Source: Paraphysomonas bandaiensis
Lineage: Eukaryota > Protista > Chrysophyceae
Assembly (NCBI GenBank): GCA_965644295.1
Contig: CBFFRP010000277.1
Coordinates: 124,001 to 188,000, forward strand
DNA length: 64,000 nt
Reading direction: 5' to 3'
Part shown: in pieces, positions 413 to 54,183 of the stretch
Layout: the number at the start of each line of letters is the position of its first letter
Numbering within the stretch: the first letter of the stretch is position 1
Notes under the pieces: generated by a model
Told to the model about the DNA's origin: nothing
Database searches by the model: none
Seen by the model: the letters and a program-made list of their open reading frames with translations, nothing else
Made by a program: the position numbers and the translations under genes

Positions 413-1330
413 ATGAGTGAGGACGGAGTCAATGTCGATTCCATTCCTGAGAAGTTTGAAAAGATTCTAGACTTTATCCCTGAGGAAGAGGAGGTCGTCT
501 ATTGGCTCAACGCCAAAAATTCTGACTTTTGGGAATATTTTTCGTATATTAACAATGAAACATTCTGGAGCTGTCCACCGTTTAGTTTTGTGTTTGCATG
601 CTGCAATGCTTTCAATCTGCCTTGTTTGTATGCCGATTACAAAAACAATTCGAATAAAATATTGATTGGAACAGACGAGTCTTTAATAGTTGGATCACTT
701 GATGATACATCCTGTTGCTGCTGCTTTTCACCTAATTTTCACGCAACTGCAGATGTATATTCTTGGAAACATATTAAATTTATAGGTAGCAAACAGGAGT
801 TTGAACAGAAAAAGCAAAACCATGACTCATCCTTTTCTTGCTTGCCACGAACGGTTTTCCTGCGTAAACCTATGGATGTTCTTCTTGTTGCTAAAAGGAC
901 TAAAGAAAACGTATCGCGTGGTATCTGGCTCGATTTTGTTGAGGACAGTGACGCGCGGATAGGCGAGATCAAGGCTCTACGCAGCCGCTTGAAATCCAGA
1001 CGACGAGTTGTACAGCGCAAAAGTAAGGGGCATATGCAGCTTGTGGAGTTGGGGACATCGGCCTCGCAGCGGACTTCTGAATACTCAGAGGGATCTTCAA
1101 CACCAGAACCAAGTCCTAATCGTATGACAAGGGCACCAATTCCACGCCTAAAGGAGGGTTCTCCTACCCCTAATCCGGTGAATACTGAAGAAAAGGTGGA
1201 AGACGAGGTATTGTCGTCGTCTTCGGAAGATAGTTATAAGGATGATGAAGGAAACGATAGGGAAAGCACTCATGATGATGTCAACACCATTGATCTTTAT
1301 AGCGATAAAAAGGATTCTTCACGTATATAA
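413..1330 (+). CDS. Hypothetical protein, 305 aa, single exon; Cys clusters in the N-half and an acidic low-complexity tail
   Basis: Long ATG-initiated ORF with coding-like composition; no family recognised. Confidence 0.7.
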   Translation: MSEDGVNVDSIPEKFEKILDFIPEEEEVVYWLNAKNSDFWEYFSYINNETFWSCPPFSFVFACCNAFNLPCLYADYKNNSNKILIGTDESLIVGSLDDTSCCCCFSPNFHATADVYSWKHIKFIGSKQEFEQKKQNHDSSFSCLPRTVFLRKPMDVLLVAKRTKENVSRGIWLDFVEDSDARIGEIKALRSRLKSRRRVVQRKSKGHMQLVELGTSASQRTSEYSEGSSTPEPSPNRMTRAPIPRLKEGSPTPNPVNTEEKVEDEVLSSSSEDSYKDDEGNDRESTHDDVNTIDLYSDKKDSSRI

Positions 1331-1633
1331 CCACACAGTTCGTTGTCCAATATGTGTGTTTTGGTTATATACGTGGTTGTCATGAATTGATCCACTAGCT
1401 GACACCATCTGATGCAGTTTAATCCAGTGTACTAGTGAGTGGGTGTAATGTAGACGCTTCCTCAGCATTTTTAGTTTTCTGATGCTGTGATCTATATGTA
1501 AACTGCGCTATTTTTGAATGCGTGATGTGCACTATTAACTAATAAGAGCGCTGTTATACATTCGCCATTGTATTTACGAGTAAGAGTATTCTTCAACTGG
1601 TAAAATCTCTGTGAGTTACTTATATATGTATGA

Positions 1634-1879
1634 AAGTCTTATTATTAGCAGTAGGCGTTAAGCGTTAAGAACCAACACCAGATGAGTTGTTAGTTGAAGA
1701 CTAGTCAAGAAGCTAGATCGACCTCTACCCTCTACCAGGGATAGGGAACAATATATTGTATTGCAATCTATTTTCCCTATCCTACCAGTAATTAACTAGA
1801 ATAAATTCTCATATCCTACTATTTAACGCTACAGAAGCTGCATGTGCGTCGACACAAGCACCAAGGTGCAACCACTTCC
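1634..1879 (+). repeat. Dispersed repeat family A, copy 1 (partial)
   Basis: aagtcttattattagca...acctctacc...atcctactatttaacgctac.gaagctgc.tgtgcgtcg..caagcaccaaggt..accacttcc aligns with 61207-61385. Confidence 0.8.
1739..1782. mobile_element. 44-bp mini inverted-repeat element with a 6-bp target-site duplication
   Basis: TIR ggatagggaa/ttccctatcc flanked by taccag (1733-1738 and 1783-1788); absent from the homologous repeat copy at ~61285 (cctctacctgtaactaa). Confidence 0.65.
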
Positions 1880-1998
1880 AATCTTGTGTGTGAGGGAGAA
1901 GCTCTCTGCGGACTGCGGACGATAGTCCTTGAAATACAGAATGATTGTAGATTCATTTGTAAATGACTCTCATCCCAATTTTGTCTGAAAAAAGAGAA

Positions 1999-2152
1999 TA
2001 TCTATTATTCAACCTAGTCAAATTGGTTGAATTACCTTGTCACTCCAAAATTGGTGTAAAACCTAGTCAAGTAGTTGAAAAACCTAGTCATTTAATAATT
2101 CATGTTTTCAGTTTACAATAATGACTAGGTTGACTAGGTGTTTTAGGGTATT
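1999..2152. repeat. Dispersed MITE-like repeat family B, copy 1
   Basis: acctagtca x3 (2012, 2061, 2082) then inverted tgactaggt x2 (2122, 2131); homologous to 41367-41480. Confidence 0.7.
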
Positions 2153-4138
2153 GAATAGGTGCATTGCGAGGCCGGCCGCGTTTCCTAGCAGAGGCTTGTT
2201 GATTGAGCTAGACAGGTGCTTCGCATCATTGTCCCCTGGTGACAACATTAAGAAATAATATAAAGGACTATAAATGTATTACACATACCTCGCAAGTGAT
2301 GTACGGCTAGCGAGTGGGGGCAGTATCGACCATTGTCCATATGATTTGCACATTCTGTGCTCAATGAATAAGATTCTCTTTGAGTTCACGTACCTATAAA
2401 ATTTATTTGCTGTTAAGGATGTATAATCGATAAGTAATTAACCTCATTTCTACCCTAGACTATAATATCCATGATACTGTATGACTAACGACACACTTCT
2501 CATGACACAGTATGACAAATGACATTTTGATTACTATTTCTAATTATTCCGTTTTACGTGATAGTTATATTCTACATCTTTATTCACTTCCTACATTGTT
2601 GTGTTCATCACTTTTCCTACTCGCCACTTAAAAATTTGCATTATAGTACTCACAACATTTTTCTTACTGTTATTAAGATGAAATCTTCATATTATACACA
2701 CTGTATTCGAGTCAGTTATACTTGTACATTACTTGATTAATGTGGGAAAAAGACAATACATCGCAGTTTGTATACTCCAACTCAAACATCATTGTTCAAT
2801 AAACTTTCTATATCTTGAAAGTTATGGGCAATGTTTTAAGAGAAAATATATCTGATAATGATATCAAGCAAGAGATTAAAAGTTATGTTGTTACTATATT
2901 GCAACATACAGGACATGAATTATCCTGTTTATACCTTTCAGTTTTTAGAACGTCTTCGTATTTATAAAAATACGGAGTTTTGGTTACCGCACAGTCAACA
3001 AGTATTAGATTCCGCACAAGCAGCCTCCTTAGTACATTAGTATTATTTTGTGCTAGATAGACTTCTGTTTAGTTTTGATACTTACATGCATATTGCTAAA
3101 TAATTAGACAATGTCATTATATATCTAGATATAGTCATATTATAATATTTCATTGCATTTTTCCTTCGTGAGATTGATTAACCCATATACAATATTAGTT
3201 GGACCTTATTATTGTATAGATTCTTTAAACCACGAAGATAGGAGAGTTGCATAACTATTATATCTCTTATTAAATATTCGCTTTACTCAATTACAGTTAT
3301 AACATCTTCTTGCGACGACATTAGTAATTTTTTAAAAGTTTACTAAATTTTTAATAACTGTTATAATAGTATATATTATATCATATATATATTTCTATGT
3401 TACTTGCACATGTGGGAGTTATTGTTGTAAATTGCTCATTGTTAACTAGATCTTAGAGAGAATTTGTCGTTAGACTAGATAGATTAATTAATATCGTTTA
3501 CACGAAGTTGTGATAAACAGCACAAGCTCATTTTGTTCCACGCATAATCTCCTACACATGTGAACCTTTCGTTACTAGACATATCTTGAAAGATCAAACT
3601 ATTTCAATTTCTCAATATCATCACAGCATTTGTACATCACTACATTTCACTGTATTCAAGTACATTGTCTTCAAGTGGCATACTGAATATCCTAGCATAA
3701 CATCCATATTCTAATAGTTATGTGTATTGAGTTATAGCGTATCTTTAAAATAATATACTACTACTACTGCGGGTATACCACACAACAACGTACGATGGTG
3801 GGCAATATATATAGGTGGGCAAAATCTTACTTAGTATATTATTACCAGGACTGTGTATCAATTAAGTTTCTATTAATTGACGCTTGCTGCAGTCAATTAT
3901 AATTCCAATTATTACTTGCTTTCAATTATGCATTTATTTAATACTAAATTACATTAGCTCCCAATATAGCAATATAGCTACCTCACTGTCATTTTATTCC
4001 AGAGGCGACGGCTCCTGCGTAAAACGTAGTAATTCTTAACAACTTTTGAGTGTAAAGAGATTGTATTTTATTACCAATTAAGTGAAGCAAACTGGAGTCA
4101 ATTATAATTTCAATTATGATTTGATGTCCCAATTTCAA

Positions 4139-4540
4139 TTATATAAATTTTAAATATGGACAATTAATTGATACGCAGCCCTGAGTATTAAGGCTTCTAG
4201 CTAATTTATAATTCTCAACTCGCCATAAATTTGGTGCGTTCATACCTTCAGTCCTATATATATCAACCAGACGACCAATTCCTCCCGCGCAGAAAAATAT
4301 CTTGGTGACCTCATCCGCTGAGAAATTATCTCCTTTATACCGTGCACGACAATACTCCTTCAGGAATTCAGGGGTGCGAGGAGGACGGGTTGAGATATAG
4401 TACACAACCCACACTTAATACTAGGGTATATCGACTCGCCCGACTGTCCAGAGTGGGCTTCAAAGACATATTCCACATTTTGACTGTGCCCCGAAAATCG
4501 ACCACTTCTTCCCTGTCCTGCTTCTCAAATCAGTATTATT
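4139..4540 (-). pseudogene. Probable degenerate coding fragment
   Basis: GC-richer island in an AT-rich spacer; protein-like translation (EVTKIFFCAGGIGRLVDIY) with no proper start. Confidence 0.3.
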
Positions 4541-4857
4541 GATTCTAGTTCAGAAGGGGCGGTTGAAATATTAACGTGTCCTGAACTGACAGCACGTAAA
4601 ATAAAATGTTGCCGCCATGATCTTATTATGTAGATGGGCGTAAGGAATCACATCTCACATTTCTGTGCATTGAATATATAACAACAAAGAAGTGGCGTAC
4701 ATATATAAATATATCTGCCATATATGACATTAACTCTACATAGCACTGTATCGTATTGTATTGTACTTCACTGTGACCTTAAATGGATGATCATATTCAT
4801 ACTAACAGCTGCATGGACTGCTATATGATCCCACTGAGATCTGCACTGTACAGCCGG

Positions 4858-4880
4858 AGTACAGTACAGTACAGTACAGT
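4858..4880 (+). repeat. (CAGTA)n pentanucleotide microsatellite upstream of the TOG gene
   Basis: agtacagtacagtacagtacagt seen directly. Confidence 0.8.
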
Positions 4881-5254
4881 GCTGGTATTGTACTTTTCTA
4901 GATTGGATGGAGAAAATAAACTTCAATTGTGACCAAAAACTGTCTGAAATATGTGTGAAAATGCAGGAGTTGCTGTTTGCAGTAGTACAGCATGATCTTG
5001 CAGTAGTGTATACAGAGGTACACAAATGCTGCATATACAGAGTGTACTTCTGACGGATGATCCGATAGTGTATGTAGTTTAGTATGGTGTGATCTATTAA
5101 GCGGTATGGCTATTGGAATTATTACCACAATGGTGTGAAAAACTGGACACTACCAGTGATGTCTATCATCCCACCTACTGCAGTGTTTCTGCAAGCACAT
5201 ATGGTCTCTATTAACTGTATCGGCTGATCTGATCTGAGCTGATCTATTCATAGC

Positions 5255-8200
5255 ATGGACTCTGTTGATGAGGTGTTATCTCGCTTCACTGATATTCAGA
5301 ATAAACTATACAGTGACAAGAGACTCGATGATCTATTCGATATCACATACGTGTATTCACAGCTAGAGCGTTTTTGTAATGATGTGGACACCACTGTCCT
5401 TGTACAGGGGATTAATATACTTCACGACAGCATCATATTAACGAAAGGCACCAAGAATGAAGTGTTTGATTCTCAAATATCTGTGATTATTAGATCAGTT
5501 GTTAGGTGTCTGGATATCCCCAAAGACGAAGTTTCTACCATGGCGGAGTCTTTACTTCTGGATATTTGTAGTGATCAAAATTTCTCTATACTGATTAAAA
5601 AAGAGGTGGAGAAATCACGTTCATGTGGAAGTCACACTTTATCATCGCTAGAAGTCTTGGATCGGATACTTCTCAAAGCTACGGCGCCCCAGGCATCATT
5701 AATTTGTACTACAGGAGAAAATATCGATGACCGATTGGGCACTATGAATGTAAGCTCCGCTTATGGCAATGGTGTGAAAAACTCTACATGCTGTGATACC
5801 AATTCCGTCCTGCTAGAAATCAGCTTCCTTCCCCAGTCTACTACTGAGCAATGGCTGCTCGCTAGAGGTCCTGAAGAGGTCCTGATTTATACCCGCAAAT
5901 ATTCTTCGTTGTTATGTTCTGAGTGCAGGTGTCAAATGTACTTGACGAAGTGTACCAACTGTACTTGTCCCTGAACGAAGACAGACGCACCCGTTGTGTA
6001 GGCGAGGTTTCCAAACTTGTAAATCATGCGATACGCAGTATGAAGCTCAATGATGTTGCGGTGGTAGTTAATGGCTTGCAGCTGTTAGAAGCTCTCGTAA
6101 GTGATCATGCCAACGAGTTCATTCCGGAGTTGAGTGCCCTATTTCCTCGAATTCAGGTGACTCAGTGGACTTAGTATTCTGTAGCATTCTTTATTGGGTC
6201 TGTTTAGTCGTCACAATTTGTATTACTGTTAACATTTGTGTGTAGCAATACATGGATGACTCGAGAGTGACAGTGCGCCACCACGCCCTTCGCCTCGGTG
6301 GTGCCTTAGTCGTCCGCATCCCATTTTCTAGTACAGGTCGGTATGTTTTCGGATGTATTGATTGCAAACCTTCTCATCCCGAGATATCACTCCGATGTGC
6401 CTCATTGGCTCTTCTATGTGTACAACCCTCGCGCTCTGTCATTAACCCGCTTATATCCCGCATCGTTCTCATTGCCGGAGAGTACCTGGGAGTAACAACA
6501 ATGAGCATACCTGACTCACAGACACCAGTTCAGAGTACTGCTGCCCAAGAAGCTGCTAAAGACTTGGTCGCAATAGCTCTGATGATCCTCTGTTTCTCTG
6601 GAAACGAGGATGTCTGTGACTGCGATGCTGGTATTGAAGACGTTCTTCCTAGAAAGCTGTGCAGCCTTGTCGGAATCCCTCCAACCTTTTCCTGTAGTAG
6701 ACAAATATGTCAGCGCGCGCTTCAGTCCAACTTCCCTTCCCTTGAGAGCGAATCTTATACTTCTACCCTTGCCGCACTCGCCATGGAGAGCTCACTTAGT
6801 GACGACATGTGTCCGTCTGCCCGTCGTGGTAAAATGACGACAGGCAAATCACTATCTGAGGAATGTGAAGGCAGTGGGTATGACTCGGGAAGGCCTGTTG
6901 TGTCGTACCCTACTACGACTTCATTACCACAGACTGTGCCCGCATCTGACAATAATAGTCAGAGCAAGAACACCACACCTGGGATACGTATTGAAATCCC
7001 ATCTTCACCTGCTCTCCGTTCGCATCACCCATCCACTAGCGAGAATAATTCTTTGGAGTGCAGTATGACACTTAACAATTATCAACCCTCATGGACACCC
7101 TGTGACTCGGGTGTGACAGGGTATGCCTCCCTCGCATCTCCTTGGGCATGTACAAGTAAACGTATGGAGGCGGATGGGGATAATGATTTGGACAAGAGTA
7201 AATTACGGTCCATCAAGAGGGGTGGGCGGAAACCCGGCTCACGACTACGGGCGCGGACTGCAGACCAAACTTCGCAGTCAGATGAGTGGACAGCGGGGTC
7301 TCTTCAAAATGCTCCTGCCACCGCATTTGGTCGTATTGGTGGTAGCTCGGAGGGAGACATGCCTTTGCATGAGTTGAAGACGCCTGTCGACACTCCAAGC
7401 CCAGATCCCATAATTGGATCGAACACACCAATTGAACTGGGTCGCTATTCTAATGACGGCAAGAGAGAGCATCGGCTTGAGGGAAAGTCCCGGGCTCCAT
7501 TGCCTCCGAGGCCTATGGTTCCGACAGCCAATCACCGATCAAAGTTAGTCCTTGAGAGCAATGGGTCTGGGGTAGAGACACACCTTTCCCTCCGAGTGGG
7601 CAATTATGATTGCGACAGTGATACAAAACTGAGCGCTGAGGAAGATGATCGCGATCCCCACAGAAGCGAGACGGAGTTTGGCATGCCAAAGCGACCACAT
7701 TTATCGAAGCCGAAGAACATAGCGCTTTCAACTGGGTCTGACGAAGACAGTGGGAACGGATTCGCGATATGTGGGTCATCTGTGTTTGGAAGTAATGATG
7801 CTGCTGATGGGGATGGGTTTTCATTCGTTGCGTCTCGGCCCCCTCGACGTAATCGTCATAATCCTCAACGAAAGGAACCCTGCAAAACATCACTTAGTGA
7901 CCCGCACACAGATGAAGACAAGATAGCTCGAGTCGCGAGATCTTCCGATGACGATAATGGTGTTGCAAGTTCTCAAGAGACTTTTGAATATCTTTCCACA
8001 GACCAGCTGCTACCTTGTGTTAAGCCGAAGAGGGATATTAATAAAGTTGTTAGTGGTCTTGCAAATCATGACTGGCCTGATATATTTCACACACTCAACA
8101 TCGTACGGCAGCTTGCTATTCACCATGGAAATGACCTTCATTCGAGCGGTCACCTTCATACCATCGTTCTGGGTGTCATGAAACAAGTTGAGAACTTGAG

Positions 8201-9956
8201 ATCGGCAGCTGCGAAGAATGCTATTCTTGCATTAGGAGATATATATCGCGGACTCAAAGTTGGAGTAGATGCGGAAGTTGCAGCCTCAGGAGCCGTTCTT
8301 ATCAAGGTGTCATCCCATTTCGTATTATCTTCTGGATCTCACGTTTTTTTCTAATCAGAGAGTTGCCGATAGTAGTGTTTTTATTAGTGAGAGTATTGAT
8401 GATTCTCTGACTGCAATGATCGATAATGTCAGTCCATCCCGTACGCTCACAGCACTGCTTTCAGGAATCGACAATCGTAGTGGCTCGATACGAGGTCAAG
8501 TTGTCCGCATGATTGTCATCTTATTTCAGAATAGGTAGTGGTATTTCAGAATGTACTTTACATGTATGTCATTTTATGTGTGTGACAGGACAATGGAATT
8601 GAATAATACGAAGGACTTAGAGGCTCTCTTTTCCAAAATGCCGAAGATGCTTGCAGACACGTCACCAGAGTCGAGGACCTTTGGACGAGAGCTTGTGAGA
8701 TTGCTCCTGACATCGCGCTTGACAACAAAAAAATATATGGAAGAATTATTGTCTGAAGAGATTGTGAAGAAATCGTTACGGCAGTCAGGAGATTATATCA
8801 CGAATCGGTTTTCTTCCCTTACACGATCACCTGGTGGAAATCGAAGCGGAAGTCCCGTGAGTCGTTACAATTTGTCGAATAAAACGAAAAAGAATTCCTG
8901 TCGTCAATTGAACGGAACAGGGGACCTTTCTATTAACGTGCGTGATGGATCAGATTATGACAGTCCAACTGAGGACCTCGTAGTGTCTGGTAGGAGTCCC
9001 AGAGCCGGATCTAACTGTGCCGGAGGAATTGCATCGATGAGTCGGAAAAGGGGGGGATGTAACGTAGAGAGTCAGGGACGGACTCTCACTAAACTTCAAC
9101 AGGAAAATTACCCTGAGATAGTGGCCCTGCCGGGAATTATTAATGGCCTGTCAAGCAAGAACTGGAGTGAAAGACGAGACAGCCTCACCACACTCTGTGA
9201 TTCTATGCTTCTAAACTATGAGCTGTTTGCTAAGGCTGGAAAGTTACAGGAGTGTATGGAGAGTATGCTTGAACGATTTGATGATGGATCTGTAAAGGTG
9301 GAAGTTAGATGATATGTGTATCATTTCTCATTGTTTGGGTTTGTTTAGGTTGTGCTACATGCGGTGTCCTGTGTAAGTCGAGCGCATGCCCAATATCCAA
9401 ATATTCTTTCGACCATGCTGTTAACAAGCCTTCCTGCGGTGTTAAATGTGGAATCATCGGCAAACAAGTAGGCAATGTATGTTTTGTGTTTTCTGTAACT
9501 GGTATTTTTAGGCAAGTAGCCAAAGAAGGAGCGTTATTACTAGCGTCTCTTCTTGCTGTCGCTCCCAACACGGCACTATCACAACAACTAGTTGGAATAG
9601 CTCTCCATGATAAAGATCGTGCCAGAGCCGCAGCATTCCGAGCCATGACTAAGTACATTTATATACATATCGCACGAGAAAAGCGAAATGAAGCTCCTGC
9701 GGGAACGATTGCGACAATAATGAAAAGGTTGTGCTCTATGTATAGTGTCTGTATATTGCTGACGACGCCTGTTAATATGTGCAGAAACTTTTACCCAGTA
9801 GTTTGTCAAACTTTGTGTTCGAACAGTTCGAAATCTGAAGTGAAAACCTTTGCGGCAGACACTCTTCGCGCAATTCAAAAGAATTCGAATGAGTATATAG
9901 GGGATTGGACGGACTCGCCAGTTTATAAAGAAGAATTGAAGCGAATTCTATCGTAG
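5255..9956 (+). CDS. Multi-exon TOG/HEAT-repeat microtubule-binding protein (TOGARAM/FAM179/CLASP-like)
   Basis: ORFs 5255, 5923, 6252, 8269, 8551 and 9309 join through GT-AG introns. TOG motifs WPDIFHTLNIVRQLAIHH, NLRSAAAKNAILALGD, LADTSPESR, SSKNWSERRDSL; Ser-rich linkers. Confidence 0.8.
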
Positions 9957-12329
9957 TATTCCTATAAATATCCTTGTGTATGTGTTATGTTTGAAATTGA
10001 GTGATATGTGTCTGTCAATAGCCTTAAATTCAATTTTGGAGGTAGAAGTTGTTGGATCGACTTGAATTTTGCGCAATTCGTTATTACGAAATATGTATAC
10101 ATGCGCTGTGTGTATTAATCAGATTTATAGCAAATGACTTAGGGCAGGATTTGTGCGATTATAGGAAATCATAATGTTGAGATCAGCTGTATGATTGTGC
10201 AGCAATTGAAGAGAGTTTTTGATAGGGGAAACGAACTCATATAATGGGAAAGAATGTTTTCAGTTAATGATTAACTATGACACATAGCATGACGTTTTAT
10301 TCATTTTGGTTGCGAAAGCCTATGTCTCTGTTTGTAACATATACTTCTCGTGTCCATAAGTGATGCGTCCTATATCCACTATCAACTGAATTTATCGTAC
10401 CTCATGAATGACGTGCGTGTTATCCCCATTTGATTAAATTTTATTTTCATCTTGAAATCAGCGGCAGTACAGTACTGCATTCTAACAATTGATGCTGTAT
10501 GTAAAGACAAACTTTTGGCATATTGCTGAAACCTTTATATAACACCAGCAGGAGTATCCTGTAGCTTCTTAATAAGCTTAAAAGAATTCAAATTTCTCAA
10601 TACTGGAATACGTACTGCAATGTGTAATGTACTACTGGAGAGATAATATGCATTGGACTGAAACATAGAAGGGTGTGTTGTCGTCTCCGTATGTGGTATA
10701 TAACGGGAGTGAGATGTTGGTTCAGTATATATTACATATATGTACATGTGTATATTATCTGTATGCTGTATCCTACGCCTCACAGGATTCTTGTAGAATA
10801 GAGTGTATTGCGGAGAGCTAGCTGCAGTATGATTGCATCACACTAAAGAATGATAAAGTCCGGCTTCTATCAGGGCTGCGTAACTATTAATAGCAATTAA
10901 TTTGCCAATTACTATCTAATTAAATTAGCTACTCATTACAAGCACGAATAGCGTCTTCTACTGTACTTGCATTCCACAGAAGTCTATTAAAGCGCAAGAA
11001 CGCAAGGGCCTTCGATCGATGGGGTGCCATGGAACAATCACGAGAGACAGGAGGAAATCCTTCAGATTCGGCTAGTTGTCAACCAACAACTAATTGGAGT
11101 GTAAGATAACTACAATAACAAGGTATGTATACCAATAGTATTCAAAGTAACCTTTAATAAAAACTGATTATATAGTATAGTCCGTCCTCATACACAACCC
11201 CCTTCCACATCATTAGTCTGCAACAAATAAAGACTAGTATTTCGCAACCCATTTCGTAATATAAGCAAGTCTGATTATTACATGAGAACGGTTGTGTACT
11301 GAAACTAGTTTTACATAACTAATAACTGGACTTGCTATATATACTACTAGTGGCGGGCAACCGTTAATCCATTTCATAACATATACAAGAGTCAGTTTAG
11401 GTTTCTTATTTATAATCTATGATTATGGGGTGTCAGTTTCAACATACAGAACTTGCGGTCGCAAAGTACATTCAGCTCGATTTCTCGCAGTATGCTATCT
11501 ATAAGTTGGTAAAAAAGTAAAGTGCCAGTAATTATAACAAAGACATAGCTCTTCACTTCTTAATTTCAGTTCCCCAGGGCGTAGGTGTTCCTACCTTTTT
11601 ACGCGTAGTATATAGTGAAAAAGTATGCATCTAATACAACAATACTATTTTTTATCAGAGAGCATTCACTCTGCTGTACCTTAACCACGTGTCTCTATTT
11701 AACAAGAAATTTCAGCCGTTTATCTACCTTGCTTCTGTGCATGATAATGGCGTTACATTTTATTTGACATACGTAGAAGTATGAGATCATTATAACGTAA
11801 GAATGCTATGTTTCAAAATGTGACGTGCACAATTACAGCACGAGGGGTACATCGTCGAGGGCAAACATTTGATTAGTGACTGACAACAAATACCACAACA
11901 TCGACTGTCGATGAGGGAGCCCCCTTGGGGGTGAGGGAAAGAGTTCTCTTTTTCTAGTATAGTTTTGACTACGGCGTCATTGTATTAATCCGCTTAACAA
12001 ACTATTTCAATAAGATTGCAAAGTCGGTTCCTTTTATTACATATTACCTTGTTGGACTATATTTATACTAACTATATAAATATCTCTTTAAATACTTATG
12101 AATCGTATTTTACTGGGAATGAGTGTGTCATTACGTCATCGGTTCGGTTATTGCTACACGCCCAAAATATATAATTTTATTTTGGCAATAGATTTTCAGG
12201 AGCCGAACTGGACAGAACAAACCAATCAAAAATGCAGATATTGATGTTGTTTTAGAAAAATCAAATAATTATTTAAACAAACAAAGATATCTTCACTTAA
12301 ACAAAGCCCAATATTTATTTAACATGAAA

Positions 12330-42523: not shown

Positions 42524-43342
42524 TTAATTGATAGTAATAAGACATTCACTACTGCTAACAGTCAACATCATAACTAAGATGAAAGATAGTTTCTGTTCGA
42601 ACCGAATGTCGAAGTTGAATGTATATATTTTCCCGGTGCTAATGTTAGCGTTCTGGTAAACCCAATTCAGGTCAAAATAACTCTTTTTGACGAAAAATGG
42701 AAAATTCTCTATTGGGGAAATAATTATATTGTTTACAACAACGCAAGTTTAAGATTTATGTGTAGAGTGTTGAGTTTTGCTCTTTGCGAGCAACTAAAAG
42801 CTGTATTTCAAGGTATTTAATTTATGACTTCTACTTAAAGAATACTGTAGTGGTTAAGAGTATTATGAGAACTAATATCATGATAGTAATCATAGTTGTG
42901 AAGCTGTAATATATTGACCATCATATAAGATCGTAATATATATCTAATATTGTATGAAAATGATTGGTAGTTGCGATAACATGAATTTGGCTTTCGACAA
43001 TGAATGATTAGTGATATTGATCTTAATTTTAATAATTTATAATTCAAGCATTGAGTGTACATTACGTTATAAGATAATTAAGTGTACACCATCATTCAAA
43101 CATGTCAATTTCTGATATAGAGCAACGTTAACAGCTACAAATATTTTGTGGTGAGAATCAACTACTAATATGGGAAATACGATTTAAGTATACAACACTT
43201 CACTATGTCCGTCGTTATGTAATCTAATTCATCAAAACAATATATCACCGTATAATGTACTAAATATGACGGAATCACCACAAAAAGTGTTTCCTAATAT
43301 AATCGATTTCATCATTCTTTGTCGGAATAGCCCAGAAAAAGT

Positions 43343-46300
43343 CTAATCGACTTTCGTAACATTGGCATTATCAGAAGATTGGTTTGCATTCTTATTGGGA
43401 GCCTTTGAAACTGAAATCATTTTCGCTATTGCGTCGGCAATTGATTCGAATGCCTCTTGCTCTTTCCCGGATACAAAGCCCCCTTGGTTTGTCATTATTG
43501 TTTGGTAGACATCCCTTACAGTCATGCTATCGTGCATGGGAGCTCCAATAGCTTGACGACTCATGTGCTCGCGAATTTTAGATTCAACAGAATCGACAGC
43601 TGCATTGGCAGGAGGCGATTCAGCTGGGCACCGATACCGCCCATAGACTACTTCTCCAGTAGTCTCATCCTTTTCAATCACTTCGCCGACCATCACAGGG
43701 TATATCTTTTCGATCAGTTTCAGATTCCTGAGTTCAAGGGCTAATCGATGCTCCAAGAACACATTATCAACCTTAGAATCCGGACGCAGATTGGCAAAAT
43801 TTTGCCAGGCTATCTCTGGGTGATGAATAGCGTCCAGAGAAAGTATCGGTACAAAAGCCTTACTTTGAACGAGACCATCGCAGAAACCCTCCTCCCAAGG
43901 AACGCCTGGTTCTAGACATACCCTGTCCCACCACACCTTTAAACCACGATCCAGCAGCATACTATATAACAACGCAACACGATCGGCATCACTACGGACG
44001 CGATACGACAAAAACACATCGTACTGTGCCTCTTCCCCAGGCATACGAGCTGTAGTTTTGTTGGAAAGAAAAGGATGGGCAAGGGCTCTCGCAGCGGTGG
44101 GTCTATCGCTTGGGTCACGAGTGAGAAGCTGGGAAATAAGGTTACGAGCATAGTTATCCTTCACTTTGGCCAGCTTCGTGTCTTTGAATTCTGGTGTCCA
44201 CTCGTGCAGTAACTTCATATTCTCTTGGTCGATATTATCTTCATCAGAGGATATGAAGAGCGGCTCGGATGAACACAATTGAAACATCTGCAACATATGT
44301 TGTTACCAAACGAAATTAACACATGTTATGGTACGAACCGTAACGCCAAAAGACCACATATCCATAGAAGGATGAGCCGGAACAAGCGAGTAAGGAAGCA
44401 GTTCCTGCCCAGCTGGATGAACACACTCCTCGTCATTCTCGTCTACATCAAAGCGTCGAACGCCGTAGTTCCCTAACTTCTCGTCAAAAAACAACAGCTC
44501 GGGGGCAACATATGCACTGCTGAATTTGAGACCCGCGTAGTGACCTTTAGAGTAGGAAACAGATGCATCTAAATCAATAAGCTTGTATTTTCCATTCACC
44601 CGAACTATATTCAACGGCTTGATATCGCCTGTACTTAAGGTGTTGGTAAAGTAGAAATACAAGGGGTGTACTCACCATGCACTAAACCATTGCTATGTAA
44701 GTGATCCAAAGCCTTTAGGATCTGAGAGCATGTGATCTTAATGATGTCCCACTCGCGTCCACTTATTCTTTCATGAGCCATCACCCGTTGAAGAGTTCGA
44801 TCAGCAGCGGGCATTACAAGACAATAGTTGTATCCACTATATCCTTTATTCGTACACTCTGACTTAAACTTCCTATCCTTGTCGCCATCATGAGTTCGCG
44901 TTATATCCATCACGTACTCATTATCAAGCGAATTATTTACATGGAAGGCCCTCTCTCGCTCAAACTGATCACGACGCTTCATAAACTTCAGAGCAACATC
45001 TTGGTTTTCATCTTTTCTATCTACTGCAAGAGCAACAATACAGGTTGCAGATTGATGCTCCTTAGCTCCATAAGCCCGGATGTCATACCGTTCGTAGAAA
45101 AATAACCTTGATCGAATCAGTTCCTGGCATTTCGGAGTAGCAATATCAACAGCCTTTCTACCATGTTGATCTCTGGCATCAGCCAGTCTGAGAGCTAGGC
45201 CACCGCATATATTTAATACTCCCTCTACAACTTCTACATGTTTCTCATCGACACTAGTAAGAGTCCAGGTCCAGGCGAAGCCGTGCTCAGATGCTGGTAC
45301 CATCATCTCAGTCACTCGATCGATGGGGAGTGTATACGATAAAATCTCCGCAAGGATCTCAGTAGAGCGGTTCACGGAAATAGCGTACTGGTATACAGTC
45401 AGTTTCTTGCCGTTCCTGACGATATTCATACGAGCAGACTCAGGTGACTCTTGAAGGCATTCTTTAATTTTGGACAGCGGTGCATTTTCGTGTAGACGCA
45501 GATAAAGAGGGCATAAGGCGAATTGCAATGTATCTGTACATTTTGGTCCCCCAAGGCTCAAAACAGTTTGTTTTCCATCCTTGGATGACACGGCTGACAA
45601 CTCCTTCACTTGATGAGATCTAACCCTTAGAATTTTGCTGATCACATTAACATGTTTATCATCTGGAGTGAATAGTCTGAGCCAAGCGTTACCGTGATTC
45701 AATATATGTGCCCCTGCTTCATCAAAAGGAAGACTATGAAGTACGACTTGAGTTTTCACAGCATCAGGAAAGTTACTTTTCTCGTCAAGGACTAGATCCA
45801 CTGCTGTTTTTCCTTCGAAGTCAAAATCTCGTATAGTGGACGCATGCTGCGGTAGATGCGCGGAAATAGCTTCGAGAATATCTCCCTTCCTGTCCACAGC
45901 GGCGAGCTCACGGTGAATCGGTAGAGACACTCTTGCAGCAGCACCGGAAGCGGTGATAACATTCAGCTGGGGTGAGTATGTTGTGCAAACTCCAATGCAT
46001 GAGGGGGAAAGAACAAACCATACACCATTTGGATTTTTTGGAAGTTTTCCTTTAACCGGTTTCGACATCACAACAGTATCAGGACGGAGAGATAAGTCAT
46101 ACGCTAGCAAAGCAGACTCTCGTATGGGTACAATTGCACCACTTCCTACCGGTCGGTTAATGTTGGAATTAGACGTTGTCAACGATGAGTCAACTGGAAC
46201 CACCTGAGAAGAATTTGACTTGGAATTTTTATTAGTCGCTGCAGGTTTCCATTCTGACGCTGGTGCTCTCATTCTAGCAACTACGATTTCAGACTTTCCT

Positions 46301-48384
46301 TTTTTTTTAACAACTTCTCGTAAAATTATCCATTCTGAACCCGAATACTCCATTCTGATTGTTACCTCAGTAATACCTTTCTTTGGGTTCGGGTGATGTA
46401 CGTCTGCTGCCCGTACTACACGGGAATAAACAGGTCGGTCATGCACTAACCTATGAGCTGGAGTAAACAGACCGTTAATTTCTGCCGCGTGGAGACCAGA
46501 AACATCGCGAATAACGATCGGCATTGTCGACAAACGTCGGCTCTCTAAAATAGTTTCTGCAACTACTTGAGACGTCTTTTCGCTGCCTAACTCTAACGCG
46601 GTCTCTCCTTTCTTATTACGTAGATTATATAAGGCGTTATGCTTCACAAGAAGGCTTGCAATGGTAATATTGTTTCGACGACAACATATGTGTAATGCAG
46701 TGTCCAGCTCTTCATTCACCGCGTTTATAAGTTGTGCAGACTCTGATTTAATCAGTGTAGAAGCTACATCTTCGTATTCACGGTTACAAGCAATATGTAA
46801 GGCTGTATTATTCCTGTCGTCTGTGCATGTAAGCATTGCACCGTGCTCAATGAGTCCCTCCAGAATTCTAATTTTCTGTGGAACTGCAGCACCTAAAACG
46901 GAGTCTTCGTCGTAGTCGCAGCCTCTCTCCAAGAGTAGAACAGCTACGTCATCACTTCCTGCATCTGAAGCAATCATGAATGGGGTCTTGTTAGCTTTAT
47001 TTCTTATATTAATATTGCATCCGGCAGTGATAAGTAGAATAGAAACCAGGGAGTTGTTCGCTGATGCAGCCATGGATAGCGGGACGCATCCATTGGCGTC
47101 AATAACATTCAAATCCGCATGGGCATCAATGAGTGCAACAGTAACTGCTTGCTTCATAGACTTATAGCACTTGAGACAAACGTCATACTTGCACTCACTG
47201 CAATGTGCATAAGGCAAGTCTTCGTTTACTGTACTGATTCGCGTCATACACATCCGACATTGAACTCCCATATGTGCTTCCTCCTCTGCATTCGAGTTCA
47301 GATCAGCAGAGGTGTAGTGGGCTGGCTGTCCTCTATTCCATTGCATACGGTGGCGTCCAGGATAAGGGCATACCATATCAGTATTAGATTGCTCAGGCTG
47401 GTATTTCCCACGCTCATCCACAACATCCTTAAGCATCAGCTCCACCGCCAGGTGTACGGCTGTCTGCCCCTTGTGAGTGCGTGCATTGATAGAGCACCCT
47501 CCACGTAGCAGCGCTACAACAATATGAATGTCCATTTGAAGAACCCCGAGCATCAGAGCTGTATAACCATCTTTCTGCGTCTGTGCATCTACATTGCATT
47601 GGCTGTCTAATAGGGTTGACACCACATCAACATTTCCAGAAAGGGCACCCTCATGCAAAGCAGTGTACCCATCATCATTGGGCTGGTTGATCGCGGCACC
47701 TAAGCTAAGTAATTGCTCAACGATATCTGCCCGACCACCTCGTGCACTATAGTGAAGTATTGTGCTCCCCAAAACCTTGAAGCCGTTTATAAGACTACGT
47801 TTTTCCAGCAAATGTAGTAGCAGAGCCGAGGTGACTGTTTCTCTTGTCAGATCAGATCCCATATCACAAGCAAGAGTCGTACACGAGCCGGTTGGGAGAT
47901 AGTTGGAGCCTGCTCGAATAAGTTTAACCGCTACATCTGCTTGGTCATGATGAGCTGCAAGCTGAAGAGCTGTTTTTCCCTCTTTTTCGTCGGTAACATC
48001 TTTCTTGAGGTCGGAATTAGTGAGCAGGAGGTCTACCACTGCTCCTTGACCATGAATAGCAGCCATATGGAGAAGGGTATATCCCTGACACTTTAAATTC
48101 ATGTGATGTGGGTAAGTCTGAATATATTTCTTCAGAGATGGAGTGTCCCCATGTTTGGCATACTCGAGAGCAGTGGGCTCCAAAGATGTTAACTATATAT
48201 GTAATTTAGTTACATATAAAGACATAAGTTTCTTTACCTGTTTGGGCTTCTGAGGCTCTTTCTTACGAACTGCAGTGGTCTCATCAATCGTGTCTGCAAC
48301 TGCATTAGCGACATGAGTGACGACATTCATGCCACCGCTGATGACTGATGTCCCCAAATTAAAGAGGGCCCCAAACATATTCAT
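43343..48384 (-). CDS. Ankyrin repeat - ZZ-like Zn finger - protein kinase - TIR domain protein, 4 exons
   Basis: Many TALH/TAVH ankyrin repeats; CRMC...CSECKYDVCLKC; kinase VALK, HGDIKPLN, DLD, YVAPE, DMWSFG; TIR YDVFLSYR, VWWD, FVPILS, DNVFLEHRLAL, IYPV. The three GT-AG introns keep the frame. Confidence 0.9.
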
Positions 48385-48983
48385 CTTCCTTTAAGGTTAC
48401 TCAGTCAAAGACTGTTGAACCTATACAGATGAGTTTCCTCGTAAGGATATTGTTATCTCTATGGAGATATATGAGTGGGGTTAGATTGCGGACAGGGATA
48501 TGCTTATATACACTGTGTCTGTAATATCAACAGCCAGTGCTGTGACAGCAGAGTGCAGTTACAACCCAATGAGTGCGGAACAATCCCCAGTTACGGATCT
48601 TTCTCCCGGTAACGGATCTATCTATCGGTCAGGTCGTGTCTGGAGGACACGAAATTTGCCATAAAATTTGTGCTGCAGAAGTTACTGTAGTGGTTATGTA
48701 CGGCTCCATACGGTGAAGAGGTATAAAGCAACCAGATGCCGTACAAAGCAGGGTACAAGGCAGGGAGATATGTGCCCACCTCACCTGAACCTGGGAAGCT
48801 ATTTTGTACATGTAAATAGAATCAAGTTCTTCATAATGTCTACCCACCCCATTAGTGTAGGTGCATTTGATCAGTTTGTCTGCAATACATTATGTAGTTC
48901 TCAGCTTGAAGGGGTGGGTGATGGTCGCTCTTAAGCCGCAGTCCTTTAGATATCATCATCAGGTATTACTACTCATGAATGAG

Positions 48984-49349: not shown

Positions 49350-52300
49350 ATGGGGGAAAGTAAGAGAAGCAAAATAAAAGCAGCTCCTCAAATAGAGGAA
49401 TTGTTAGCTGCTTCGGGTTCTTCGTCTAAAAAGACGAAAAGAGAGAGAGAATCCTCTCGAAAACGAGCAAGAGATGCAACAACATCATCTCAAATGCAAT
49501 CTTCTCCTCAAACTGAGACATCAGTAGAGGCTGAAGGAGAATTGAGTGGAGTATCATTTCGTGAGCTCTCTTCTTCTCAACCAAAGAGAAAGAAGCAAAG
49601 GAGTGGAGATCCGCACCCCAACAGGAGTGAGCGCATTGACTTGAATGAAGTCATTGCGACGGAATCCACTCCACATGAAGTAATCAATACCGACTCTATT
49701 CCCTACTTAGGTAGTGTGCAAGATGAGGATATCATCGAATTTTGTGAAAATCTCTCGAAAAGAGATCCTAAAGGGACAAAATTCATAAGGTCAGAAATCA
49801 TGGCACCAACAGTGCGTGATATGCTTCAGTTTCAGCGACAGCAGGATTTTGGAGATGAGTCTGACGAGGACTGGCTAGATCCAAACATTGTAACTACTGA
49901 GGAATTGATTCAGTGGTTAAAGCAAGCCTTTCTAGAGGAAGAGGAGCGATACTCTGATACATTGGAGCCTCTTCCTAGGTTCATAGATAATATCATTGGA
50001 CCAAAGGTTAAGGTGGATATTCATGTTCCTAAAGTATTCTTAAAAGAATATGGACGTCTGAATGAGCTTTATAAGCTCATTCCGGAGGCAAGTCTCACAG
50101 AGGTAGCCTCGGATACCATAGTCAAAACCCTCAAGAAAAACATTAAACTTGTGGGCGGACATTCCTTCAGAAAGGATGCCAAAGAGAAATTTATAGCGGA
50201 TATAGGCCAAGGTCAATCTGCACCAAAAGATTTCGGAGCATTCTGTAGAAAGGTGCGAGAGCTTAACAATGACTATAGTCAAGCTGTGAGAAAAGTAAAG
50301 AGGATGGAAACTAAATTGGATTCCAAAGAAACATCTAAGTCTAACAAGACTAAGAATACAAAAACTTCATCCTCCAGCTCATCCTCAAGTACTAAAGCAA
50401 CAACTGATACTAAGGAAGCATGTTGGATATGCGGTAATCTTCATAAAGGTGACTGCACCCGCAAAACCTGTGCATGGGCTAACCATGAAAAGAAGCCATG
50501 GAAAGATTCCACACAGGGCAAAAAATATGCGGTTATGGGTTGGAGTACCTGCCCTTATGTGGAGAATCCTGATGGTCCTCCAAGATCGAAAACAAGTAAG
50601 TTATCATGCCCTAAGTGTTTATATATAAATGCTATTGACATGAATAATGATATGCTCGATGTCTTTGTATATCCTAAAGCTGATGTCAATGTACAACAGG
50701 TAAAGGAAAATCTAAGAGCTAAAGCCTTATTGGACACGGGGGCTACTGGGAATAATTTCATTAACCAAGAACTTGCTGATATGTTAGTTGCTAGGTATAG
50801 AATTCCATTGCACGAGTGTAACATTAAAATTTGTAGTGCGCTTGATAATGCTTGTTGTAGTAGCAAGCAATATATGATAATAACTATAAGATTAACTGAT
50901 GAGTATAACAATACTCTTGATATTGAGTTGCAATGTTTGATAATAGATAGCACCTTTGATATCATAATTGGTAGAGAAACTATCAAGAAATATAGATTAG
51001 TTGATCATTTTCCATCTCACTTTATGGAAAGAGAGTTAGCAGGGAAAATGCTAGCTACGGCCGCGGGCCATGCTGAGAAGACTCAGCTTCTCTCGGAACA
51101 TATTAGTGAGAGAGCCACATGTTATAATAACATGGAAACATTAAGGCGCCAAGCTAAGGAACACCTTAGTTATAATAATAATTTACTTACAAGTAATAGC
51201 TTGGTTAGTACTATGTATTCACCTCCAATATCATCCATGCGTATAAGTGCATATGAAAAGGAAGATATAGGCGAGATTAGAGATAACTATCTGGAGTCAA
51301 TCCCAGAAGAAATAGTTACAAATACTCAGGAAAAAGTAGAAGGTACTACGTTACCAACTAAAATCTCTGGTCCCGAATCTTTACAAAGGAGGGTGAGAGA
51401 AATCCATGAAATCTATAAGGATAGATTTAGAACCACAGTGTCGGATATGCCAATGGATGTTCCACCTTTTGAATTAGAGGTAGATAGGGATGCTTGGGAA
51501 CAACCAAAACATTGTGGTCCGCCACGAAAGATGGATCGAGTACGACAGTATGCTTGTAAAAAGCAAATCGATACATTTGTGGAGCATGGAATAATACAAC
51601 CAAGTACGGCTCCTTATTATAGCCAGGTATTATTAGTTCCCAAACCAAATGATAAATGGCGATTCTGTGTAGACTATAAAGGTCTAAACAAGCACACACA
51701 GAGGGAACGTTGGCCAATACCTAACATCAAAGAAATGTTAGAACGTATTGGGTCTAAGAAACCCAAATACTTCATAATTCTGGATTTAGTATCTGGTTAT
51801 TACCAGGCTAAAATTTCAGAGTACTCGAGAAAGTGGACGGCATTTATAACCTTCTGGGGAGTATTCGAATGGCTCCGACTACCCATGGGTTTGAGTGGTG
51901 CTCCATCATACTTTCAACGAGTATTAACAACAATTGTGCTTGCCGGGTTGATTATGTTCATATGTGAATTATATCTAGATGACCTGATTATATATGCTTC
52001 TACAGAAGATGAACTAATTGAAAATTACGTTAAAGTTCTAGAACGCTTCAGGAAATACAATGTTTACATTAATCCTGAGAAAGTGAAAATAGGAGAGTCC
52101 GAAGTACAATATGTAGGACATACTCTAAATGAGGAAGGGTTACACTTTACTAGAGAACGTCTGGATAGTGTATTAAATTTCCCAAAGCCTGAAACTATGA
52201 AGGGTCTAAAATCTTTCCTCGGATTGGCAAATTATTTTCGGGATCACGTGCACAACCACTCCTTAGTGGTGAGACCGTTAAATAAAATGCTTCTCAACTA

Positions 52301-54183
52301 TCATAGACGTAAACGTCTACAATGGACAGAGGATGCCAATGAAGCATTTGAAAAGATCAAATTGATGATCCATGAATGTCCAACATTATTTTTCATTGAT
52401 GACGAGTCACCAATATATTTATTGACCGATGCATCTGATTATGGAATAGGAGCATACCTCTACCAAGTAGTAGATGGTGTAGAACGTCCAATAGGATTTC
52501 TCAGTAAAACATTCGATGAAAGAATGATGAATTGGGATACACCTCAGAAAGAAGGATATGCTATATACTATGCCTTAGATAAATGGGACTACCTATTAAG
52601 GTATAGATACTTTACGATCAAAACAGATCATAAAAATATTACTCAGTTGAGAACTGATTACGCTAAGGATAAGAAAGTTCAGCGATGGTTGAAATGTTTC
52701 CAAGCATATGATTATGATCTATGTGATATTAAAGGATCTGATAATGTTGTTGCTGATGCATTTAGTAGACTATGTGCATTAGAATCTAAAATGGAAACAA
52801 AATGTGCTTCCCTAATTCCCGATATTAAAGTTCCAAACAAGGAATGGGAAATTATTAAAAGATTTCATAACAATGTTACAGGTCATCATGGTATTGATCG
52901 TACAATACAAAAATTACGAGACAATGGTCATAAATGGTCAAAGCAAGGGGCACATGTGACAAAATTTATTAAAACTTGTCCTTGTTGTCAAAAGATGAGT
53001 AGAATTAAACCAATAATTAATGCTCATCCCTTTACTGTCTCAACATATGGCCCGATGCAAAGAATAGCAGTGGATTTTATTCAGAGTCTGCATCCAGATG
53101 AGGATGGATACACTAATATATTAGTGATTATCGATTCTTTTTCTAGGTGGGTAGAATTAATCCCTACTAAGAATCTCACTGCCATGGCGGCGGCAAAGGG
53201 GATTGCTTCAACACCTGGGTAGATATGGAGCACCTATTGAGATTCATTCGGATCTTGGACCAGCATTTGTGGATGATTTAACAAAATCATTGATAGAAAT
53301 GGTTGGAAGTAATCAATCATTTTCGATGGCGTATTCTAAAGAAGAAAATGCTATAGTGGAACGTGCTAATAAAGAAATTTTAAGGCACTTAAGAAATATT
53401 ATATTTGATAAAAATGTACTAAATAATTGGTCAATGTATCTACCTTTAGTACAAAGAATTATGAATTCTTCTAAACATAGAAGCACCGGCGTTACTCCCG
53501 CTAGTATTCTATTTGGGAATGCAGTAGATTTAGATAAGAGTTTATTCATTGAACACAATGAGAACTTGGACGGGAACGAACAAAAGCTATCACATTGGAT
53601 AGATAGAATACAAAAGGTTCAGTCCACTATTATGGATGTTGCAAGACGAAATCTTCGCAAACATGATGAAATCCACATGGCAACTGCACCAAATATACAA
53701 ACAAAAGAATTTCCAATAAATTCTTATGTGTTAGTTGAGCATAGACAAAATGCTTTACGTCCTGGACCGGCAAGTAAGTTATTACCATATCTTAAAGGTC
53801 CAATGCGAGTAGTCAATGTTATTGGAGACAAATATACTCTTCAAGATATTGTTACTAAACGTAATAAAGACTATCATATAAAGAAATTAAGGGAATTTAA
53901 TTACGATCCCTCTACTATTGACCCCTTACAAGTGGCATGTAAAGATGGTGGAAACTTTTATGCTATTGACCATATTTCAAAAATAAAAGGTCGAGCTAAA
54001 GGTCCGAAAAGTCAAATAAAATTTCTAGTACATTGGATAGGGTATGAAAAACCTACATGGGAACCATGGGCTAACGTTAGAAAAACGTATGCTCTACAAA
54101 ATTTCCTAACTCAACATCCTGATGAAAATGTAAGAAATTTACTACCTCGAAATGTGGTTTATTCTTCTGATGAAGAAGATTAA
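49350..54183 (+). CDS. Gag-Pol polyprotein (Zn knuckle, protease, RT, RNase H, integrase, chromodomain) with a 1-nt frame break at 53198-53201
   Basis: CWICGNLHKGDC, LLDTGAT, YLDD, TDASDYGIG, H..GH.G...CPCCQ, VDF/HSD/VER catalytic triad, FLVHWIGY..TWEP chromodomain. Confidence 0.93.

Follow-up and report, generated by a model that had tools for sequence, protein, structure and literature searches.

The 64,000-nucleotide stretch analysed here (the window) comes from the Paraphysomonas bandaiensis assembly GCA_965644295.1 (contig CBFFRP010000277.1, positions 124,001 to 188,000 of the forward strand) and contains, on its minus strand, an ankyrin-kinase-TIR gene that is real and expressed and encodes a soluble protein of about 1630 amino acids (aa). 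The order of the parts in this protein is an N-terminal motif, ankyrin repeats, a Cys/His zinc finger, a second set of ankyrin repeats, a middle region, ankyrin-like repeats, a Ser/Thr-type kinase and a C-terminal TIR domain. Sequence comparison places it as a divergent member of a family of kinase-TIR modules widespread in marine protists, which keeps the kinase-TIR pair and exchanges the N-terminal repeat or sensor domain. The best explanation of this architecture, held tentatively and at somewhat less than even probability, is that sensor-like repeats control a kinase and an NAD+-cleaving TIR in one chain.

An earlier note on the window, made from the letters alone, had claimed one spliced reading frame of about 1640 aa. 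The frame was recovered as a minus-strand coding sequence, 48384..43343, of four exons and three RNA-supported GT-AG introns (45, 47 and 51 nucleotides). Its product has 1632 aa when translation begins at the first ATG and 1630 aa when it begins at 48378, a start conserved in the orthologue described below. The gene model, in window coordinates, is as follows:

43026..48493, minus strand: mRNA region, the span of the alignment of transcript contig L014
48238..48384, minus strand: exon 1, 49 codons, from the translated open reading frame (ORF) and L014, with the conserved N-terminal motif MFGALFNLGTS
48193..48237, minus strand: intron 1, 45 nucleotides, GT..AG, joint 48192/48238 in the X1 and X3 contigs and a matching gap in L014
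44676..48192, minus strand: exon 2, ankyrin blocks, zinc finger, middle region and kinase N-lobe, from the reading frame and spliced contigs
44629..44675, minus strand: intron 2, 47 nucleotides, GT-AG, joint present in 4/4 runs
44339..44628, minus strand: exon 3, kinase catalytic loop to subdomain IX, from the reading frame, Pfam and spliced contigs
44288..44338, minus strand: intron 3, 51 nucleotides, GT-AG, joint present in 4/4 runs
43343..44287, minus strand: exon 4, kinase C-lobe, conserved linker, TIR, C-terminal tail and stop, from the frame, Pfam and spliced contigs

The protein (P0001, 1630 aa) was found by a word-based protein search, uninterrupted and 100% identical to the query, on the 5325-nucleotide JGI contig L014. 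Aligned to 48493..43026, this contig shows two mismatches and exactly three gaps, amounting to 143 nucleotides (45 + 47 + 51). Logan contigs from four runs, belonging to four studies, were also compared with the locus and yielded all three splice joints, with CT..AC ends on the plus strand; the whole spliced gene lies on one 6651-nucleotide contig (run X1), and 1.6-kb contigs from two marine metatranscriptomes (one polyA, one cDNA) bridge the kinase exons and the TIR. Intron 2 cuts the catalytic-loop motif as HG|DIKPLN and intron 3 cuts subdomain IX as WSFGVT|MFQL; no further introns were seen in the contigs from the four runs. A poly-T loose end at 43043 (run X9) marks the 3' end of the transcript near there. 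Because the spliced contigs and L014 span the junctions, the kinase and the TIR are carried by one mRNA, and the cDNA joins the two domains on one polypeptide, as had been claimed, rather than separating them. Between 43216 and 48127 the window differs from other-run contigs of the same organism by 12 single-base differences and two 1-nucleotide insertions, the latter in the untranslated ends, which suggests strain- or allele-level variation.

The motifs HGDIKPLN, DLD, FLSY and DNVFLEHRLAL are all present in the protein. Profile searches gave matches above the cut-offs for Ank, Pkinase and TIR_2; the ZZ profile, which the earlier note had also named, stayed below its cut-off. The putative effector end of the protein is defined by two features:

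43481..44026, minus strand: TIR domain, aa 1404-1585 (TIR_2, 39.7 bits; fold matching AbTIR and SARM1)
43751..43753, minus strand: codon of Glu1495, the putative catalytic Glu in DNVFLEHRLA (translation and profile alignment)

The TIR_2 match has an E-value of 8e-10 and 39.1-39.7 bits against a cut-off of 28. Searched alone against the PDB, the TIR matched the bacterial NADases AbTIR (2.4e-4) and PdTIR best, and a profile built from the TIRs of the host genome matched the SARM1 TIR best (7e-16). A near-invariant Glu of this profile, which corresponds to Glu1495 in P0001, faces the Glu of SARM1 WVHKEIVTAL (E642, numbered by counting from the BB-loop Gly601), and the residue had thus been correctly aligned to the catalytic position from the sequence alone. 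Glu occupies this position in at least 90% of 45 TIRs, and the TIR also has in common with SARM1 the SYR motif and the LExG BB-loop. A TIR-only search retrieved 39 close relatives (43-65% identity), and all of those extending upstream start with a kinase C-lobe and a conserved ARMxGE linker; SYRV and DNVFLEHRLA, Glu included, are invariant across 14 aligned subfamily sequences. Because the relatives that extend upstream are kinase-linked and the motifs are invariant in the 14, the TIR is taken to be a distinct, conserved, kinase-linked subtype.

The AlphaFold model of the TIR (45 sequences; mean predicted local distance difference test (pLDDT) score 70.5, high from betaA to alphaC) predicts a complete domain of flavodoxin-like fold, betaA to alphaE, with Glu1495 within model helix 97-110. 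Foldseek returned 43 matches at E <= 0.001, all of them TIR domains. The model superposes on AbTIR with 3AD with a Z of 12.9 and a root-mean-square deviation of 2.6 Å over 132/134 residues, and on SARM1 561-700 with a Z of 11.4 and 23% identity; a structural comparison with SARM1 had been proposed in the earlier note. In a TIR-only tree, P0001 and its orthologue P0002 fall outside the main kinase-TIR clade, at the end of a very long branch, and the tree did not decide between replacement of the TIR and fast divergence as the cause. PADLOC gave only generic TIR or kinase matches (weak ThsB and TIR-SAVED; PD-T4-6 and mad6) and no defence-system assignment for the protein.

The kinase is directly N-terminal to the TIR:

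44081..45063, minus strand: protein kinase, aa 1091-1385, split by introns 2 and 3 (Pkinase, 3.6e-32)

Its Pkinase match (112 bits against a cut-off of 31.7) has profile positions that continue over both introns. The best PDB matches are PAK4 and CaMKII (about 1e-14), the PAK and CaMK groups being nearer than IRAK/Pelle. The kinase is of the non-RD type, because HGD replaces HRD; the canonical GxGxxG, the HRD Arg and the DFG Phe-Gly are all absent, and the glycine-rich loop reads GAKEHQSATC. When the motifs were aligned with those of 31 family members, the residues kept were the beta3 Lys K1116, the alphaC Glu (FERE), the catalytic-loop Asp D1221 and Asn N1226, the metal-binding D1238, APE, DxWSxG and the subdomain XI Arg. 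An HxD (HGD, HCD or HSD) and a D[LM]D in place of DFG are common to the 31 members, as part of a shared set of motifs comprising VALK, F.RE, HxDhK.xN, D[LM]D[AST], SSAY.PPE, DVWSxG and RP..HPF. The earlier note had read the kinase as divergent on the basis of HGD and DLD; both are indeed present, but the implied one-off degeneration does not hold, as they are shared by 31 relatives and the catalytic residues are kept. From these alignments, HGD and DLD are best described as conserved signatures of the protist kinase-TIR family and not as degeneration, and the kinase is probably active, though atypical.

The host genome (62.6 Mb) has 13 loci with TIR_2 matches, and at least four of these are kinase-TIR genes, with ankyrin, LRR (twice) and UIM/TKL architectures. 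This is a modest expansion with swapped N-termini; counting the paralogues had been proposed in the earlier note. The other kinase-TIR genes and further TIR contexts of the genome are:

L024 (G000:C395) 6667-9640, plus strand: RNI-type leucine-rich repeat (LRR_6)-kinase-TIR gene
L025 (G000:C15) 7310-9998, plus strand: RNI-type LRR (LRR_6)-kinase-TIR gene
L034 (G000:C164:10000-19999) 699-5789, plus strand: zinc-ribbon/UIM/TKL kinase/TIR gene
L030 (C299): Roc GTPase upstream of a TIR
L033 (C239): Roc and TIR in one 1129-aa ORF
L031 (C407): TIR-SAM
L035 (C235): TIR adjoining a WD40 propeller ORF

Additional TIRs lie in long proteins with no other domain. The C395 and C15 genes are the closest kinase paralogues of the ankyrin-kinase-TIR gene (34-40% identity), and a scan covering C395 found no hydrophobic segment in its ORFs. 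In the C164 gene, about six repeats, every one bearing a CxxC..CxxC zinc ribbon, precede UIMs, a TKL-type kinase whose DFG is canonical, and a TIR, which begins at the end of a 1531-aa ORF (KFDIFFSH) and runs over two short introns (..VWYDENEM.., ..FCRKELQWAL..). The C239 TIR has the VDNVLLE form of the catalytic motif.

Beyond this genome, a search with the kinase-TIR module of C395 returned 66 relatives, most of which combine Pkinase with TIR_2. Among the domains at their N-termini are LRR_6, LRR_8, Ank, EF-hand, HEAT and WWE, and some relatives have hydrophobic segments there. The named sources are the EukProt records of Picozoa sp. COSAG01 and Paulinella micropora; one of the named records derives from a single-cell genome, for which contamination is possible. 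P0001 is colinear with many of the relatives in single BLAST high-scoring segment pairs that begin with the kinase and reach into the TIR. Two environmental scaffolds carry the same TIR subtype preceded by a kinase and long ankyrin exons:

ENA ERZ19037410 scaffold_261 (L040) 2890-8996: Ank-kinase-TIR, same TIR subtype, environmental eukaryotic scaffold
ENA ERZ19037410 scaffold_739 (L042) 4484-9008: Ank-kinase-TIR, same TIR subtype, environmental eukaryotic scaffold

As both scaffolds carry the same order, Ank-kinase-TIR is considered a recurrent architecture. Full-length database searches are expected to under-count the family, because a prokaryote-style gene caller split the scaffold genes into per-exon ORFs.

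The orthologue P0002 (1643 aa) has the same architecture and lies on an intron-free, 5389-nucleotide Logan contig. Its identity to P0001 is about 53% over aa 560-1172 and ranges from 33 to 94% by domain. The best-conserved parts are the kinase (63%), the kinase-TIR linker (94%) and the TIR (66.5%); the ankyrin blocks have 52-56%, exon 1 has 62% and the middle region has 53-58% outside the linker. The zinc-finger insertion and the middle region of about 500 aa were found in P0001 and P0002 only.

The N-terminal two-thirds of the protein contain the following parts:

47434..48192, minus strand: ankyrin block 1, about aa 48-300 (Pfam Ank_2 5.6e-30, Ank 1.7e-29)
47158..47382, minus strand: Cys/His zinc finger between the ankyrin blocks (C..H, CxxC, HCxxC and CxxC in the translation)
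46558..47139, minus strand: ankyrin block 2, about aa 399-592 (Pfam Ank families)
45544..46557, minus strand: middle region, aa 593-930, comprising a beta-rich segment (aa 593-690), a linker of low complexity and a helical part (no Pfam match, low-confidence model; no domain assigned to aa 593-690 or aa 761-930)
45064..45543, minus strand: tentative ankyrin-like helical repeats, aa 931-1090 (model, structural matches and Atlas features)

The Pfam ankyrin families matched with E-values of 1e-28 to 1e-50 (Ank_2 8e-50 overall), and weak matches to ANK_LRRK2 and to RNase L ankyrins were also obtained. The finger inserted between the two blocks had been called ZZ-like. The Cys/His cluster is real, and its eight ligands are kept in P0002, but a ZZ identity is not supported: the best Pfam matches were all below cut-off, IBR_1 (1e-4, 22.6 against 27 bits) and zf-RING_4 (3e-3) being better than ZZ_ADA2 (6.5e-3, 17 bits against 27.5), and none of its PDB sequence matches was significant (CesA RING-like, KKT2/3 and RNF31 IBR, E 0.04-1). 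The finger is assigned to the broader RING/IBR/ZZ class.

Pfam has no match across aa 593-1090. The AlphaFold model of aa 590-1100, made from a two-sequence alignment, has a mean pLDDT of 47.7, and its only usable part is aa 932-1087 (pLDDT 70-90). The structural matches of this part are nearly all ankyrin, with a Z of up to 7.7, a value below the caution level that the structural-alignment tool sets for repeats, and a root-mean-square deviation of 3.9 Å over 128 aligned residues; in the Atlas feature search, the region of aa 931-1090 scored 0.87 to an Ank cluster. These modelled similarities are leads, not proof, for an ankyrin-like nature of aa 932-1087. No Walker A (GxxxxGK[ST]) was seen on reading the middle region, and the idea of a hidden P-loop was dropped.

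As the earlier note had stated, the protein has neither an NTPase domain, with no Pfam match to NACHT or NB-ARC anywhere in it, nor a transmembrane helix by hydropathy scan, the sole hydrophobic window lying within an ankyrin repeat. Pfam and hydropathy found no LRR and no signal peptide-like segment in the protein, which does not have the layout of a Toll-like receptor, and Pfam gave no matches for SAM and ARM, so that the ARM-SAM-TIR layout of the SARM1 family is also absent. The first ~35 residues (window 48284-48378, minus strand; MFGALFNLGTSVISGGMNVVTHVANAVADTID) are conserved in P0002, even in the DNA (72%). Apart from a weak DUF6726 match (E-value 0.018), no known family resembles them; a function in targeting or membrane association is possible.

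Immediately upstream of the ankyrin-kinase-TIR gene, and divergently transcribed from it, a 1290-aa pol ORF of a Ty3/gypsy-type retrotransposon (RVT_1, RT_RNaseH, Integrase_H2C2) and an overlapping 326-aa ORF that follows it occupy 49350-54183 on the plus strand. The host genome also has at least seven silicon-transporter loci, and for the best Atlas match, Bacillariophyta was the commonest taxon; both observations suggest a silicifying stramenopile of a diatom-like kind.

For the mechanism, it is proposed that the ankyrin arrays and the zinc finger would either recognise a protein ligand or keep the C-terminal module autoinhibited, in the manner of the ARM domain of SARM1. Ligand binding or clustering may then bring kinase-TIR modules together, upon which the TIR, with its SYR motif, LExG BB-loop and catalytic Glu, would consume NAD+ or make an ADP-ribose-derived signal. 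The non-RD kinase could gate the TIR step by autophosphorylation or supply a second output. It is plausible but unproven that the protein serves in signalling or cell death set off by stress, pathogens or viruses. Several observations weigh against this proposal. The TIR model is of moderate confidence (mean pLDDT 70.5, about 50-60 in the C-terminal half). Position -4 to the Glu is Asn, where the wider kinase-TIR family has F and where SARM1, AbTIR and plant TIRs have W, and position -3 is Val, where the wider family has a near-invariant Cys (F-C-L-K-E). The glycine-rich loop of the kinase is degenerate, and therefore ATP binding by the kinase is not assured. TIR NADases need self-association, and Pfam found no oligomerising domain (SAM, NB-ARC) in the protein. 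Ligand sensing by the ankyrin repeats is pure inference, and the neighbours of the gene are housekeeping-like genes and the retrotransposon, with no immune gene cluster among them.

The strongest alternative, which is nevertheless considered unlikely, is that the TIR is a non-enzymatic assembly domain that recruits other TIR proteins, the fused kinase being the output, as MyD88 and IRAK in one chain. Exactly such a streamlined pathway was proposed for the choanoflagellate Pkinase-TIR proteins (Richter et al., PMC6040629). Candidate partners are encoded in the host genome (Roc-TIR, TIR-SAM, TIR-WD40 and TIR-only proteins), the TIR model also matches the scaffold TIRs IL-1RAcPb, MAL and MyD88 (Z 10.7-12.4), and the absence of the usual Trp at position -4 is consistent with a scaffold as well. 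However, the subfamily shows no variation in the catalytic Glu, SYR or the LExG BB-loop, animal scaffold TIRs do not have the catalytic Glu, and the best PDB matches at the sequence level are NADases, both for the single sequence (AbTIR) and for the profile (SARM1); these features argue for an enzymatic TIR.

Somewhat less probable again is a general signalling or metabolic kinase outside defence (nutrient, light, cell-cycle or NAD+ homeostasis), in which the TIR would have an NAD+-sensing or regulatory function and the ankyrins would be localisation scaffolds. The apparently constitutive presence of the gene in marine metatranscriptomes of several studies, the housekeeping neighbours and a kinase nearest to PAK/CaMK, not to IRAK/Pelle, are in agreement with such a function. 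The swapping of sensor-like N-termini (LRR, Ank, HEAT, EF-hand, WWE) on a constant kinase-TIR core and a TIR repertoire diversified as is typical of defence families point the other way, but these are suggestive only. That the fusion is an artefact of assembly or annotation, or that the gene is a decaying pseudogene with kinase and TIR made separately, is hardly credible, since nothing favours this besides the per-exon splitting of relatives by prokaryote-style gene callers, and it is contradicted by the independent spliced contigs from four studies that cross the junctions, a frame open for 1632 codons, the domains of P0002, each 53-66% identical and in the same order, and the Ank-kinase-TIR order of the environmental scaffolds.

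The proposed control of a kinase and an NAD+-cleaving TIR by sensor-like repeats can be extended to a bolder, improbable hypothesis, in which the kinase-TIRs would be protist-wide, self-contained innate immune receptors without a STAND NTPase. Swappable sensors would recognise viruses or damage, after which the atypical non-RD/DLD kinase would allow a SARM1-like TIR to exhaust NAD+ or to release a nucleotide signal, and the ankyrin/zinc-finger version would control virus-induced cell death in a bloom-forming alga. If true, this class would reach over diatoms, Picozoa, Paulinella, environmental stramenopiles and perhaps choanoflagellates, with Ank, LRR, HEAT, EF-hand, WWE and transmembrane sensors. 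TIR domains connect bacterial, plant and animal immunity, and diatoms, to which much of marine primary production is due, are killed by viruses; to our knowledge, almost nothing is known of TIR signalling in diatoms. What is new here is a cDNA-verified protist protein with a kinase hard-wired to a SARM1-like TIR, and a kinase-TIR module, with an HxD/DLD kinase, that recurs across protists with swapped sensors and had earlier been thought choanoflagellate-specific. With these sequences, there is a defined family in which the construction of immune-like receptors by eukaryotes, in the absence of NLR NTPases, can be studied.

Among known systems, the bacterial TIR NADases (AbTIR, PdTIR, BtpA/TcpB, ThsB) give the best single-sequence PDB and structural matches, whereas the protein described here is eukaryotic, intron-containing and multi-domain, and we know of no operon partner or effector such as ThsA for it. 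The likeness extends to the generic TIR fold and motifs and no further. LRRK2 (Ank-LRR-Roc-COR-kinase-WD40) and RNase L (Ank-pseudokinase-RNase) also have ankyrin arrays N-terminal to a kinase-fold domain controlling a C-terminal effector; in contrast, there is no Roc-COR and no RNase domain here, and the TIR would be the effector, so that the resemblance is one of architecture and logic only.

SARM1/TIR-1 is likewise soluble, with a helical-repeat N-terminus and a C-terminal TIR, and has the SYR motif, the LExG BB-loop, an insertion before alphaC and the catalytic Glu; the logic of autoinhibition by the repeats, as proposed here, would also be common to both. Unlike SARM1, the protein has no SAM octamerisation domain and no ARM repeats, a kinase is interposed, and Asn replaces Trp at position -4. 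It is no SARM1 orthologue, the identity of the TIR being only about 23%.

A literature search on kinase-TIR and protist TIR architectures found nothing beyond Richter et al. 2018 and a haptophyte study, and it turned up no description of kinase-TIR proteins from diatoms or across protists, nor of the HxD/DLD signature in the kinase. In the haptophyte study, TIR genes, without partner domains, were tied in 2025 to microalgal virus resistance for the first time (PMC12489294). Richter et al. 2018 (PMC6040629) described in choanoflagellates the 'Kinase TIRs' (Pkinase-TIR without a transmembrane helix) and the 'Kinase TLRs' (LRR-transmembrane-Pkinase-TIR), reported these architectures as unique to choanoflagellates within that data set, and noted ankyrin-TIR combinations there as well; the idea that the present architecture is without precedent was rejected on this basis. 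As in the choanoflagellate Kinase TIRs, the kinase is directly N-terminal to the TIR in one soluble chain without a transmembrane helix. In contrast to them, about 1090 aa are added here (ankyrin arrays, zinc finger and middle region), and the module is found in a stramenopile, in environmental protists and in Picozoa- and Paulinella-labelled records. The architecture thus corresponds to the definition of a 'Kinase TIR', and the likeness to the choanoflagellate proteins, compared by description, is architectural.

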